A model generated the notes under the pieces. It had not been told where the DNA came from, ran no database searches, and was given only the letters and a program-made list of their open reading frames with translations. Made by a program: the position numbers and the translations under genes. Below are positions 32,800 to 38,776 of a DNA stretch of 64,000 nt, piece by piece; the first letter of the stretch is position 1, and every line of letters begins with the position of its first letter. Origin of the DNA: Blastocladiella emersonii ATCC 22665 (taxonomy: Eukaryota > Fungi > Blastocladiomycota); the NCBI GenBank assembly GCA_025594325.1, contig JANHCV010000002.1:2728001-2792000 (forward strand), in the 5' to 3' direction.

Positions 32800-35100
32800 C
32801 TACGAGTGCGGGGTTGGCGCGACTCTTCTCGCGTGCTGCTCCTCCTCGCACCGCTCGACCGCCGCTGCCGCCGCCGCGTCCGCGTCCGCAGCCACGACGT
32901 CGAAGCTCAAGGACGAGTGCGCCGTCGACAACCGCGACCGGGTGAGCGTGCCGGTGCCGCCCGACGTGGACGACCCGCTGGTACACGCGCTGTCGAGGCT
33001 GTACCGCACGTCGCGGCCGCTACTGCCGCCGCTACTGCTGCGGCTCGCGAGCGATCCAGCCGACGACGGCGGCGGGGAGACGAGCTGGCCCGGCCCGATC
33101 ACGTATGTGCGGTGCATCAGCGACGGGCGCGGCGAGCCGCAGTCGACGGTTGGGCTCGGGCAGCCGCCGAGATCCAGCGCGTCGATCCCGCGCTCCATGT
33201 CCGACAGGAACGAGGCGCGGTACATCATGTCGGGCGAGCACGACGAGAGCGCGGGCGGCGCGCCGGCGGCGTACGAGCTGGCGAGCGTTGAGGAGGAAGC
33301 GAACGAGCGCAGCGTGCCGTACGCCGAGTCGGGCGTCCCCAAAACCCGGTCGCCCCCGCTGGGCTTCCTCGACTTGTGCTTCCCGCGGGCCTGCTGCGAC
33401 CCGGCGACGACGTCGCGCAGGGCAGTCGCCGGGTCCCACGTCGACGCCTTGCGCAGCTTGCTCTCGATGAGGCGCGCGGGGACGAGCTTGAGGACGGCGT
33501 CACGGAGCAGGACCGACGGCTTCGAGTCCCACTGGCTGACCTTGGACTGGCGGAAGCTCTCGCGCTGGATGCGCGACACGTGCTTGATGCGGGCGGCGGC
33601 AAACTGGTGGAAGATGGTTGCGGGCGCGACGGTGGGCGGGTGCGAGGCGATGAGGTGGACGAGCAGGTGCGCGTCCTCGATGGCGAGGTTGGCGCCCTGG
33701 AACAGCGCTGGCGTGGCCGGGTGCGCTGCATCGCCCAGCAGGACGCACCGGTGCGAGTGCCAGGCCTCGGGTTCGGCGTCGTGCTCGCGGTCGACGATGG
33801 GCTGGAGGTAAAAGTCGGCGGGCCTCGTCAGCGCGTACATGCTGCGCAGCGGCTCGGGCCAGTCGGGCTTGTCGGCGAGCTTGCGCTGCAGGGCGCGGAA
33901 CTCGTCGCGCGACCCGGCCCACTTCTCGCGGACCCACCAGTATGCGAGCGAGCCCGTCTCGTTGAGGAAGCCGAAGGAGAAGCGGCGGTCGCGGTCGTAG
34001 TAGAGCGACATGGACGCGGGCTTGTGGAAGTCGTCCTTGAGCAGCAGCTCCTCGACGTGGCGCAGCACCGTCGCGTGCGCCGGGTGCTGCTCGTCCACGT
34101 ACGCGCGCCGCTGGAGCCCGCCGTTCTGGAAGTCGTCGGCGGGCACCGCGTCCGGGTTGAGCGCGAAGCTGCCGCGGAAGCAGATCTCGCCGACGTACCG
34201 CGGCGCCGACAGCGGCGGTGGTGGGGCGGCGGCGTCCGCCGGGTGCCGCTGCTGGCGCGCGGCCTCGATGAGCTGGCGGCACACGGACTTGACGCCGTCG
34301 GCGCCGAGGACGACGGGCACGGTGAGGGCCGAGATGGCGTTGCGGTGGGTGAAGACGAGCTCGACGTGGTTCTCGTTCTCGGTGCACTGGATGACGGACG
34401 TGTCGAAGAGGATCTTGCTGCGCGGCACCATGCGCTGCAGCGCCGTCATGAGCGAGCGGCGGTTTGTCATGCGCATGAACTGGCCGGGGCCCAGGACCTT
34501 TTCCATGTTGAGGGTCTTGAGCGGCGGCGCGCCGACCATGGCGTGGATCTGAGCTTGCGCGGCGCGCAGGGCGGCCGAGTCGAGGTGGTACGAGTTGCGG
34601 TGGTTGTGGTTGGCGTGCCTTGGCGAGCTGAGGCCGGGCTGCTGCTGCTGCTCATCGGCGCTGCGCGCGCGGCAGAGGTGGACGTGCTCGACGACGGACG
34701 AGTGCTCGTGCCAGTACGCCTCGTTGAAGCCGAGGTCGGACAGGATCCGGACCGCGGCGGGGAACAAGCCTATGGGGAGGATTCGGTCAGTGACCTCGCT
34801 CGATCCGCGTGCAACGCGAGAAACCGTACCGAGGTCGGAGCCCTCGAGGTGGGTCCCCTCCTTGCGGCGCTCGAGGATGACGTAGGGGATCCGTGCGCGC
34901 TCGAGCAGCGCGGCCGTGGTGAGCCCGGCGACGCCGGCGCCCACGATGGCGAACTCGGGCGGCGGGAAGATGTGGCTCGTGAGCTCGGCGAGCGGCGAGT
35001 GGGACACGCCGGACGCGAGCGTTGTTGATGACATGGTAGCGGTGGTGGTTCGATCCGGTGCGGTGGGCCGGGAACTAGACCTGGTGGACGCGCCGCTCAT
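32800..35100 (-). CDS. FAD-dependent monooxygenase (FAD_binding_3) with Ser-rich C-terminal tail; one 60-nt intron
   Basis: AIVGAGVAGL (GxGxxG), VLGADGVKS (DG motif), LLGDAAHPATPALFQGANLAIEDA (GD motif); intron 34829-34770. Confidence 0.9.
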   Translation of the reverse strand: MSGASTRSSSRPTAPDRTTTATMSSTTLASGVSHSPLAELTSHIFPPPEFAIVGAGVAGLTTAALLERARIPYVILERRKEGTHLEGSDLGTVSRVARGSSEVTDRILPIGLFPAAVRILSDLGFNEAYWHEHSSVVEHVHLCRARSADEQQQQPGLSSPRHANHNHRNSYHLDSAALRAAQAQIHAMVGAPPLKTLNMEKVLGPGQFMRMTNRRSLMTALQRMVPRSKILFDTSVIQCTENENHVELVFTHRNAISALTVPVVLGADGVKSVCRQLIEAARQQRHPADAAAPPPPLSAPRYVGEICFRGSFALNPDAVPADDFQNGGLQRRAYVDEQHPAHATVLRHVEELLLKDDFHKPASMSLYYDRDRRFSFGFLNETGSLAYWWVREKWAGSRDEFRALQRKLADKPDWPEPLRSMYALTRPADFYLQPIVDREHDAEPEAWHSHRCVLLGDAAHPATPALFQGANLAIEDAHLLVHLIASHPPTVAPATIFHQFAAARIKHVSRIQRESFRQSKVSQWDSKPSVLLRDAVLKLVPARLIESKLRKASTWDPATALRDVVAGSQQARGKHKSRKPSGGDRVLGTPDSAYGTLRSFASSSTLASSYAAGAPPALSSCSPDMMYRASFLSDMERGIDALDLGGCPSPTVDCGSPRPSLMHRTYVIGPGQLVSPPPSSAGSLASRSSSGGSSGRDVRYSLDSACTSGSSTSGGTGTLTRSRLSTAHSSLSFDVVAADADAAAAAAVERCEEEQHARRVAPTPHS

Positions 35101-35774
35101 GTCAGCGTGCGCGCGCGCGGAGACCGGTGCCCTGGGGAGTGGCGCACGGTCGGTTCTGGGACCAGTGTACCAGTCGATCGGGGCGCAGCGGGCACCGCTC
35201 GCGAGGGCGTTGCGGGACTGCCTGCAGCGGACGGCCCGGGTTGGTCGGCGCCGAGGCGCGAGTGGAGGTCGGCGAGGAGCGCGGCGGCGGGAGGCGAGCC
35301 GATCGACGCGATGGGGCTTCAGATCGCCGCGGCCTGCTCGGACGGGGAAGTCGCCGCGATGGCGCTGGGCAGGTAGGCGGGCGCGCGTACTTGAGGGCGA
35401 CCGGGCAGCCAACTCTCCACGAATCACTCGTGGGTCGACGAAGCGGCGGAACGTTAAGGCAGGGAGAAGAAGCGGGCGCCGAAGCAACGCGAAAGGGCAG
35501 GGCCGGATTAGAGTTGCAGTTGACGCTTGCTGCCGCCGACGTCGCGCGCAACGTTGCTCCCCGCGACGGCGATGCTGCGCCGCGTCACGCTGACTCACCG
35601 GCGGCTGGTGCAGTGGCCGCCTCGCGACGTGCGCGGGACCGCCGCCACGCGCGCCGAACAACGGCCGCCCGAGTTGGCTGGCGCGCGGACATGAAACGCG
35701 ACGCGAACACGCTCGAGGGGGCTGGCTGGACACGGAGGGGAGACGAGAAGCAGGATGGCTCGAGGCATCGTTTA

Positions 35775-38700
35775 TCATATATCAGTCGCAGGGTCGAGTG
35801 CTTCGGGATCAGCATCGGACGCGTCATCGCTCGGCAGCCGGATCGTCTCGGCAAACTTGAGCATCAGGCTGAGCACCGCGTTGCGGCCGCACTTGAAGAT
35901 CGACGCGCACCGGGCACAGCGCACGGTCCCGCGCCGAGACCGCCACGACAGGTCGAGCTTGCACTGGCCGTCGTTAGCCTCCTCGTCCGTTGCGAACGCC
36001 CAGCACACGGCGCACCGCTTGGCCGTGCCCGACGCGTTGACCGGGTACACCTCGATGTCGCGGCGCTGAAGCTGCACGGCCAGCTCGCCGGCGCGCGCAC
36101 GCTGCTCCCGGTGAGCGTGTCCGGCGCCACGCTGATGGCCGATCAGCACAATGGCACCCTCGAGGCGCGCCGCGAGCGCGTCGTAGTACCGCCGGTTCCG
36201 GTTCGGCGAGCTGGTGCAGGTACGCTGGATGCGGCGCCCATTACGGTGGTCGTGCGGGTTCGCGATGTCGTCGATCCAGCCGTCCTCGGCGACGACACGC
36301 CCGGCCTTAGGCGTCAGCGTGACGTGGACGCGATGAGGACCAAAATGCTTCTCCCACAGGGACCTACCCCGCTGCACGCGCTTGACCTGGGTGAAGCGGT
36401 ACCGCGGGCGCGTCGCGATCGTGTCGTAGCGGTGAAACCGGCCTTTGCCCGTCCGCGCGATCTCGCACATCTGCACGCAGAGCGGCGCGAGCCCCGCCTG
36501 CATCTCGGCCTCGGCCGCGTCCTGGTCGGCGTCGGGCACGTCGCGGACCCGTTCGCGCTCCACGTGCAGCGCGCGGGCCTTCTGCATCAGGCCGCGGAGG
36601 CGCTGGAACTCGCGGACCACGACCGTGAGCGCCGTCGCCTTGAAGCCACCCCCGATGTTGAGCACGACGAGGCGGCTGGCGTACGCCGGAATGTGAATGT
36701 CCTCGCCGACGCGGAACGCGCGCTTCCTGCTGGCCAGCATGCGGCGGCGGACGCGGAACGTCGGTGGGGCCACGGGCACGACGGGTACCGCGCTCAGGTC
36801 GGTGGCGGCGCCGTGCACGTCGTCGGAGCCGAGTACGTCGTGGATCGGGGCACGGCAGCCCCGCTGGAGCGGCGCGAGAAGCTGCTCGACGCGATAATCG
36901 GGCGCAACCTCGACGCCGGCGAGGACGGGCGCGTCGCTGAGCGGCAGCTCCAGCGCGAGCAGGGCGTGCTCGGATTCGGTCACCTCGCTCGGGTTGGTCA
37001 CGTACGCGGACGCCGGGTCGTCGGGCATCGGGAGGATCCCGTCGCTGTAGTTGTCGAGCGGGCCACACGCCCGTCGGTCGAGAGCGAGCCCGCGAACTTG
37101 TTGGTGGACCGCTCGTCAACATACAGGCTCCACAGCAGGTCATGACGCAGGATGCGGGCCATGTGGCGAAGCATGAAATCCCAGTGCCGCTTGCACCAGT
37201 ACGCCGAAGTGCGCTCAAACACGGCGACAAGGGTCACGTCGTCTGGGTCGGGCTCCTCGTCGTCAGAGTCGGGCTCCTCGTCGTTGTCGCGCGCGGTCTC
37301 GATCCGCGCATACGCCGCGAAAGGTCGCTCGAGCCAGCTGCTCACAACCGGCGACTGGGCCACGGCAGCACCGCCGTCGACGCGGTGGGCGAGCTGTACG
37401 AGCGTGCGGAACGGGATGTGCATCTCGCGGTCGCGGGCCGGGAGGACGGGCAGGACGGCCGGGCGCGGGAACGAGGCCGAGATCCGGCCGGCGTCGACGA
37501 GGCTGTCGCGTAACGCGCACAAGCGAAGCAGCTGGGTGATCTCGTCAGACTCGTGGCTCGGGTCGGCGACACCAATGGCGACCTGCACGTTCCACACGTG
37601 TCTAAGCTTGGCATCGTTGAGCATCGCGGGCGTCCACCGCCGATGATCCAGGACCCGGGTGGGGTACGGATCGCTGGCGGTACCGCCGGGCAGCGGCTGC
37701 GGCAAGGGCCTGCGCATGCGGACCCGGACACCGAGACGATGGCGGTCGACCTTGCGCGGCACCGAGGTGGAGCGGAAGAGAGGTTCGACACGGCGATAGC
37801 GCAACGGACGGCCGTGGCCGACTACAGCAGCTGCTGAATCAGGATTTCGCTCCCGCCATTCTTTGATAAGGTGCTTGACGATCCTGGAAGCGTCCCGGTC
37901 CGCCTCCGGCACAGCGAGGGCCAGGGCAAGCGAATCAATGTACTCAGTGACCCGCGCGCCGGCGTCGCGCAAAACGAGGCCCGCGAGACGGTGAGCAAGC
38001 GCGTCGATGATGTTCTCGAGGTACCGCGGCGGGACCGGCGGCTCGTCAGGCCGCATCTGCTGGTACTCGACAAACGTCGGGATGGGCACGCCAGGCGCGC
38101 CGGGCATCACAAGCCGGCCCACGGGCGCCCCCGTCGCGACTGAGCGAAGCATGTCGGCCAAGAAACGTTCGTCCAGCTTGACCGTCGTCCGCTCGGCAAA
38201 CCCCTCGGCCGCGCGGATGTGCTCGAGGTAGTGCTCGAAGAAGCACTCAAAGCGCTCGAGGATCACCGCGTGGCGCGCGTGCATGTCGCGGATGACGGGA
38301 ACGAGTCGCGCCGCGATTGCCGGGGTGCGAAAGATGGATCCGAGCCGCTTCGAGCTCGTGTAGTACTCGCCGGTACCGGGCCCGCGGCAGCCGCGGTAGT
38401 CGGGACCCGTTTGCAGAGCGCGCGGCAGGCCGGGGAGAGAGTCGTCTACGGGGTCTTGGCGGTCCACGCGGTCGTTGAAGTGGACAAGATCGGCACGGTG
38501 CGCTGTATCCGCGGCCTCGCGGGCGGCAAAGATGGCGGCGGCGGGCAGCGAGAGTGCCGGATCCGCAGTGGAAGTGGCATCGGGGGCGAGGTCGGTGAGC
38601 TCGGCGAGCGCGTGCTGGAAGGTGACAATGCCCGCGGTAGCAGCAAGCGGGCAAGCGTCGTCGATGGCGGCATCCATGGCATCGAGAGCGTCAAGCAGCT

Positions 38701-38776
38701 CCCGGTCGTCGTCGCCATCAACATCCATGTGGTCCTCGTCGAGGCCAAGTTCCAGACCGTAGCTCTCAAGAAGCAC
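35775..38776 (-). CDS. Fanzor1-like (eukaryotic TnpB) protein with non-catalytic RuvC; split in two frames at ~37060-37125
   Basis: Motifs in Fanzor1 order: N-terminal WED/REC-like KRLGSIF...LVPVIRDM...FECFFEHYL, VLPVLP...HIPFRTL, KFAGSLSTDG, RuvC-I-like RLVVLNIGGG, RRYYDALAARL..IVLIGH, VYPVNASGTAKRCAVC, VRCARC..FKCGRNAVLSL (Zn ribbon plus RuvC-III). Confidence 0.8.

Follow-up and report, generated by a model that had tools for sequence, protein, structure and literature searches.

Fanzors are, to our knowledge, the only known RNA-guided DNA nucleases of eukaryotes, and all of the characterized ones are transposon-associated cutters. In bacteria, the superfamily has repeatedly yielded nuclease-dead proteins that bind under RNA guidance: TldR, Cas12k, Cas12m, and Cas12c. 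In the literature that we searched, including a 2026 review of OMEGA systems, we found no eukaryotic nuclease-dead RNA-guided binder of this superfamily. Here we describe a Fanzor1-like locus of the fungus Blastocladiella emersonii ATCC 22665 (one strain), on the minus strand of a 64,000-nucleotide (nt) stretch of contig JANHCV010000002.1, which we call the window and which has a G+C content of 62-73% across its length. All three catalytic positions are substituted in this copy, its zinc ribbon is retained, and a 1-nt deletion splits its frame. In our judgment it is an even bet that this nuclease-dead Fanzor persisted for a while in a non-cutting role and was recently disabled.

The best structural matches of the core model of this copy are the Fanzor1 proteins SpuFz1 (8GKH and 9CEU-9CEZ), whose host is also a fungus, and PpFz1 (9CF0). 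The locus has the same domain order, WED/REC, RuvC, and then a CxxC...CxxC ribbon, and the rearranged RuvC-II site is common to both: Gly occupies the canonical position, and the glutamate motif immediately precedes the first CxxC. It differs from Fanzor1 in having Asn, Ala, and Gly (N/A/G) instead of Asp, Glu, and Asp (D/E/D), a broken frame, and an extension of ~250 amino acids (aa) that has no relatives, and in being single-copy without inverted repeats or a conserved 3' RNA tail. A natural departure from D-E-D within Fanzor1 is also seen in GtFz1, from Guillardia theta, in which the third catalytic residue is Asn and which is still active; the D606N variant of SpuFz1 is even more active (PMC11423790). 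However, GtFz1 changes the third residue only, whereas this copy has no carboxylate left.

Among bacterial proteins, TldR (Wiegand et al. 2024; bioRxiv 10.1101/2023.11.30.569447) offers a close parallel, in that the RuvC site is deteriorated while the fold is kept, and both TldR and this copy lie beside host genes without a transposase or transposon ends. In contrast to this copy, TldR proteins are bacterial or phage-borne, are often truncated at the C-terminus with loss of the zinc finger (the zinc ribbon is kept here), have an adjacent guide RNA gene, show an association with fliC or oppF that is conserved in many genomes, and are encoded by unbroken open reading frames (ORFs). Cas12k, Cas12m, and Cas12c are RuvC-impaired members of the same superfamily that bind DNA under RNA guidance and set a precedent for a non-cutting role, but they are prokaryotic, linked to CRISPR arrays, and found with Tn7-like transposons or in defense.

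Homology, fold, and catalytic positions

The locus is laid out as follows:

35775-38776, minus strand: Fanzor1-like locus, two ORFs in different frames
36998-38776, minus strand: ORF1, the N-terminal ORF, 592 aa
35775-37028, minus strand: ORF2, the C-terminal ORF, 417 aa, with its own ATG at 37026-37028
37058-38776, minus strand: N-terminal half, reading frame 1, with the ~250-aa extension and then WED/REC-type segments
35775-37057, minus strand: C-terminal half, reading frame 2, including the stop codon, with a disordered linker, the RuvC domain, and the TNB zinc ribbon

In the public annotation, ORF1 and ORF2 are joined by two predicted introns into the 871-aa model H9P43_002832 (P0001). An exhaustive phmmer search of 1.84 billion protein representatives matched P0001 to six B. 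emersonii paralogs with E-values from 9.5e-24 (P0002; another paralog matched at 2.3e-18) to 8.5e-5, and all six carry PF07282 above the Pfam cut-off. Two further family members were added by profile search, giving eight annotated paralogs, P0002-P0009 (in order, H9P43_003608, _006016, _004398, _004874, _003300, _000783, _001163, and _008851). On this copy itself PF07282 (Cas12f1-like TNB) is faint (E 0.035, 14.7 bits against a cut-off of 26.3). Sequence similarity to the solved Fanzors was detectable through the family profile only, which matches the Spizellomyces Fanzor1 structure 8GKH, SpuFz1 (E 1.3e-3), as well as Cas12f (7e-5). With protein-language-model features, ORF2 scored 0.96 to DUF8286/PF07282 clusters, with 181 of 256 features in common; these clusters are Fanzor-type and come from giant viruses, green algae, and Mucoromycota.

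The N-terminal half is homologous as well. BLASTP matched it to P0003 (E 1e-14 and 5e-4), P0005 (7e-7), and P0007 (7e-5), ORF1 is collinear with the N-termini of the paralogs, and the alignment with them shows that this copy retains all four invariant residues (N, F, G, and D) of the N.F.G...D motif. Homology to the paralogs is thus collinear from the N-terminal WED motifs through the C-terminus. In the family alignment the identity is 20-27%, and over matched stretches it is 29-34%. The ~250-aa extension at the start of frame 1 has no known relative. Several other searches returned nothing: ORF1 and ORF2 had no match among PDB sequences, the ORFs had none in NCBIfam, a protein-atlas feature search of ORF1 gave only noise (best score 0.53), and a word-indexed protein search with ORF2 gave no informative match, so that homology emerged through exhaustive phmmer only. 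No relatives outside B. emersonii were found in the profile search of the protein library or in a scan of JGI metagenomes, and no ortholog was present among the 1.84 billion protein representatives or the JGI metagenomes.

For the fold, we modeled residues 553-871 of P0001 with AlphaFold2 and obtained a core model with a predicted local distance difference test score (pLDDT) of 71.5 and a predicted template modeling score (pTM) of 0.70. The 50 best Foldseek matches in the PDB were all Cas12, TnpB, or Fanzor chains (50/50), with E-values down to 3.4e-4. The best VIA-align matches were SpuFz (Z 9.6) and PpFz (Z 9.5), over ~200 aligned residues, and the alignment covers SpuFz 362-623, the region that contains D383, E541, and D606. 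A longer first model of 423 aa was too disordered (pLDDT 57) and gave Foldseek E-values of 3.7e-3 or worse. On this model, the RuvC (RNase H-like) fold and the zinc ribbon inserted into it are retained.

The initial annotation had recognized Fanzor1-type motifs here from the sequence alone and had called for profile and structure searches; both gave a Fanzor1-type assignment, by sequence at the level of the family and by fold for the core model. The motifs that it named are homologous and not chance resemblances. Because both halves are collinear and homologous with the paralogs and the core model has the expected fold, we regard the locus as a full-length Fanzor1-type gene. It is a single-copy, highly diverged member of the Blastocladiella Fanzor1-like (eukaryotic TnpB) family.

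The positions that bear on catalysis and zinc binding are:

36657-36659, minus strand: RuvC-I position, AAC, Asn in LNIG; Asp in (v)DPG in 8/8 paralogs
36138-36140, minus strand: canonical RuvC-II position, Gly in VLIGH, as in all paralogs
36033-36035, minus strand: alternative RuvC-II glutamate position, GCG, Ala in VNASGTAKRC; V.E.YTSKRC in the paralogs
35886-35888, minus strand: RuvC-III position, GGC, Gly in CGRNAV; (R/C/G)D.NAA in the paralogs
35907-36014, minus strand: zinc ribbon CxxC...CxxC (TNB domain) with the preceding Lys-Arg, family-invariant and retained

The motifs and codons reported in the initial annotation are all present, and its claim that the triad had become N/A/G is borne out by the family alignments, in which the eight annotated paralogs all have D/E/D. 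Its choice of glutamate was also correct. In Fanzors, RuvC-II is rearranged, and a glutamate ~45 residues away takes over (PMC10530073); the Gly at the canonical RuvC-II position is found family-wide and is the Fanzor-type rearranged site, not a lesion. The catalytic residues of SpuFz1 are D383, E541, and D606 (PMC10432273, PMC11423790), and in the profile alignment the family glutamate falls on SpuFz1 E541 and the third Asp on Cas12f D510. The substitutions do not stand by themselves: the invariant Pro beside the RuvC-I position is replaced by Ile, and the invariant Tyr and Ser of the V.E.YTSKRC motif are also lost. No acidic residue (Asp or Glu) that might act from an alternative position occurs within 5 residues of any of the three triad positions. 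The zinc ribbon, described earlier as intact, does have all four of its family-invariant cysteines (codons at 36012-14, 36003-05, 35916-18, and 35907-09).

With Asn, Ala, and Gly in place of the three acidic residues that bind metal, and with most of the neighboring motif residues gone, the protein is predicted from established RuvC chemistry to be unable to cut DNA.

The frame break, candidate introns, and 3' flank

The initial annotation assumed a fused product of ~1000 aa. There is no such single frame, as a 1-nt frameshift separates the two ORFs:

37055-37060 (about 37058), minus strand: frame break, GCC CG^CTC GAC, which fits the loss of one base in an Arg codon
37045-37097, minus strand: intron candidate of the public model, 53 nt, which restores the frame
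37045-37124, minus strand: intron candidate, 80 nt, GTATGT...CAG, which restores the frame

The WED/REC-type part of the N-terminal half includes VLPVLP..HIPF at 37409-37456 and KFAGSLSTDGRVAR at 37058-37099, both on the minus strand. Up to the break, one frame encodes KFAGSLSTDGRVAR, and right after it the next frame encodes LDNYSDGILP. The counterpart of LDNYSDGILP in the paralogs is V.MYRDG..P, so homology resumes directly after the break. The strand motif N.F.G...TDG(Y).AR(V).(M)YRDG..P is common to all of the paralogs, and the deletion lies within this conserved WED strand (TDGRVAR before it and LDNYSDGILP after it), with KFAGSLSTDG directly at the break.

We considered whether the break could be a sequencing or assembly error and the gene one intact ORF of ~1000 aa. 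The break does adjoin a short C run (GGCCCGC), and all of the available runs come from one sample. However, the Logan assemblies of three DNA runs, assembled separately at depths of 22, 134, and 5, agree without a single difference over 3.5 kb, one Logan contig separately spans the break (36832-37241), and the reference is a PacBio HiFi assembly that was polished with Illumina reads for small indels (PMC9730499). An error is therefore highly improbable; because the three runs agree and the reference was made in this way, the frameshift is real in the sequenced strain. The 425 codons that follow the break are stop-free, which suggests that the deletion is recent.

Intron rescue is rejected as the ancestral state: both candidates would remove the family-conserved strand. 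Since the strand is still well preserved, it can have been intronic only briefly, if at all. The intron of the neighboring FAD monooxygenase gene (34770-34829, minus strand, 60 nt) serves as a local reference for candidate introns; it begins with GTACGG, ends with CATAG, and has a CTGAC branch signal ~20 nt before its 3' end. The 80-nt candidate has no such CTGAC signal. The H9P43 gene models were predicted ab initio with funannotate, and RNA-seq is not mentioned in the genome paper (PMC9730499). The other predicted intron of H9P43_002832, the first one (37709-37942, minus strand), is in frame, stop-free, and homologous to the N-terminus of P0003, and it is probably coding sequence wrongly removed by the ab initio prediction.

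Signs of mobility were sought as well. No inverted or direct repeats bracket the locus, apart from short ones at chance level, and no second contig with at least 80% identity was found among the genome's own reads, so the locus is single-copy. DNA similarity to the paralog loci is confined to ~75 nt of the YTSKRC motif. One further feature was tested for omegaRNA:

35530-35774, minus strand: 3' flank, tested for omegaRNA, no support

The flank folds no better than shuffled sequence (minimum free energy z-score +1.6 against 200 shuffles), has no credible Rfam match, and does not resemble the conserved 3' tails of the paralog elements at the DNA level. On these three comparisons, a downstream omegaRNA is unsupported.

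These results bear on the reading of the initial annotation, that of a nuclease-dead Fanzor taken over by the host as an RNA-guided DNA binder; for the locus to be alive today in this way, the break would have to be spliced out or the two ORFs serve as separate pieces. In its favor, the locus is single-copy and lies between host genes without element ends, the 80-nt candidate with its GTATGT and CAG ends restores the frame, and ORF2 has its own ATG. But either intron would delete N.F.G...TDG..AR, which is conserved in every paralog and well preserved here, the longer candidate lacks the branch signal, the public gene models that splice the gene are ab initio, the 3' flank has neither a guide-RNA-like structure nor an Rfam match, none of the sequencing runs listed for the locus was an RNA run, and the ortholog searches described above were empty. 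On balance, a living gene of this kind seems unlikely. A working RNA-guided regulator, by analogy with the bacterial proteins, would be unlikely too, if anything slightly more so. We regard as distinctly unlikely the specific case of a eukaryotic TldR counterpart, that is, an exapted nuclease-dead Fanzor1 that would load a guide RNA and bind DNA by way of a new intron or two cooperating halves; if true, such a protein could regulate genes or silence related elements.

Decay or maintenance of the protein

The main alternative to a period of maintenance is ordinary decay, with the locus a relic of a mobile element that carried a Fanzor. The triad losses, the frameshift, and the long branch would then all stem from neutral change, and the losses would cluster in the active site by chance. 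To compare the active site with the rest of the protein, we used the 22 columns that are invariant across the eight paralogs, 8 of them in the three RuvC motifs and 14 elsewhere. This copy keeps 1/8 of the RuvC-motif residues and 10/14 of the others (Fisher p 0.024). In a leave-one-out comparison, retention in divergent paralogs with an intact triad is comparable (14/21 for P0007 and 14/19 for P0005), so outside the RuvC motifs this copy has kept its invariant residues as well as they have, and its WED and zinc-ribbon motifs are intact.

The reading frame is similarly well preserved. The 999 sense codons contain no stop, whereas each of the other five frames of this DNA has 7-25. The paralogs are only 20-34% identical, so synonymous sites are saturated. 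We ran a neutral simulation (HKY model, equilibrium G+C 0.66, kappa 2, substitutions only). The simulated probability of no stop fell from 0.10 at d = 0.05 to 0.015 at d = 0.1 (d in substitutions per site), and the probability that all three catalytic codons had changed was at most 0.02 at d = 0.1. The joint probability of the triple loss with no stop in 999 codons peaks at ~1e-4, with indels not counted. Put another way, a neutral triple change predicts 4-10 stops and many indels per 3 kb, and the locus has 0 stops and 1 indel.

Because the losses are focused on the active site, the frame is stop-free, and the neutral simulation disfavors decay, we infer a past phase when the protein and its frame were still maintained although catalysis was no longer required. 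The earlier suggestion that the scaffold had been kept, and was not decaying at random, stands to the extent that it fits better than uniform neutral decay (1/8 against 10/14, and the joint probability of ~1e-4). The companion claim of host-like codon bias holds in part. The bias is retained, but measured as G+C at third codon positions (GC3) it is 0.80 in ORF1 and 0.88 in ORF2, somewhat weaker than in the neighboring host genes (0.94); the paralogs have 0.87-0.92.

Several observations weigh against maintenance. When columns conserved in at least 7/8 paralogs are used, retention in the motifs does not differ significantly from that elsewhere (p 0.18). The terminal branch of P0001 is the longest in the family tree (3.3 substitutions per site, compared with 0.9-2.4 for the others), which, together with the lower GC3 of ORF1, also fits relaxed constraint. 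The case for selection draws on one sequence, few invariant columns, and a simple neutral model, and the locus was picked after the fact for its triple loss, which is a selection effect among the many Fanzor copies in this genome. No ortholog (protein representatives, JGI metagenomes), guide RNA, or conserved gene association was found. The long branch, the GC3 below the host level, the post hoc choice, and the lack of orthologs all favor the relic, as does a frameshift in a conserved strand, and we consider a plain relic possible but somewhat unlikely.

In the reading that we prefer, a nuclease-dead Fanzor maintained and then lost, the losses are concentrated in the active site, and the zinc ribbon, the WED strands, other invariant residues, and a stop-free frame of ~1000 codons were kept. 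Selection would most likely have preserved the protein for a while as a pseudo-nuclease without catalytic activity, and its former role, by analogy with TldR, Cas12k, and Cas12m, may have been to bind RNA and/or DNA. The 1-nt deletion in the conserved WED strand would have come afterward; it split the gene into the 592-aa and 417-aa ORFs. Because this deletion breaks the frame inside the conserved strand, the locus today is most likely a recently disabled gene and not a working regulator.

Paralogous elements and neighboring genes

The paralogs P0002-P0009 resemble this copy in GC3, but unlike it they have kept D-E-D in 8/8 cases. Two pairs of them are near-identical elements, P0002/P0008 and P0003/P0009, with noncoding tails after the stop codon of ~255 and ~105 nt. 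One element pair (L003:3791-5946 and L006:5007-7143) is 91% identical over 2.2 kb and has the ~255-nt tail, and the other (L001:4189-5898 and L007:5345-7057) is 88% identical over 1.7 kb and has the ~105-nt tail. In both pairs the similarity stops sharply, marking the element boundaries, and the conserved tails are likely the omegaRNA and right-end regions.

P0005 (H9P43_004874; L002:4001-5920) has an uninterrupted ORF of 639 aa with the full D-E-D, the zinc ribbon, and a GC3 of 0.90, and among the copies examined it is the best candidate for a Fanzor that may still be active. In the P0008 model (H9P43_001163; L006:4001-6882), the N-terminus of an alpha/beta-hydrolase (PF07859) is fused to a Fanzor C-terminus, so this model probably either is a chimera created by the annotation or reflects a Fanzor element that inserted beside or within a host gene. 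About 500 nt downstream of P0009 there is another diverged Fanzor fragment (L007:7479-7943), with 36% identity to residues 391-545 of P0003.

The neighbors of the locus are a casein kinase I gene and a FAD monooxygenase gene, with a spacer of ~700 nt on either side. The mechanical ORF of the FAD monooxygenase (32800-35778, minus strand) extends upstream until it abuts the Fanzor stop codon. Its first ~225 residues (window 35100-35778, minus strand) are low-complexity and probably noncoding, and the true start is likely near 35100. Opposite the Fanzor gene, there is an antisense ORF of 672 aa (35127-37145, plus strand) that is unsupported as a gene; it is the type of long spurious ORF expected opposite a high-GC3 gene.

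The triad-intact paralogs in the same genome, including P0005, could serve as matched positive controls for this copy. With its active site eroded while the fold, zinc ribbon, and frame were kept, the locus is a concrete candidate for exaptation of this superfamily in a eukaryote. Given the broken frame and the lack of orthologs, what it records may be an exaptation episode that failed or has already finished.

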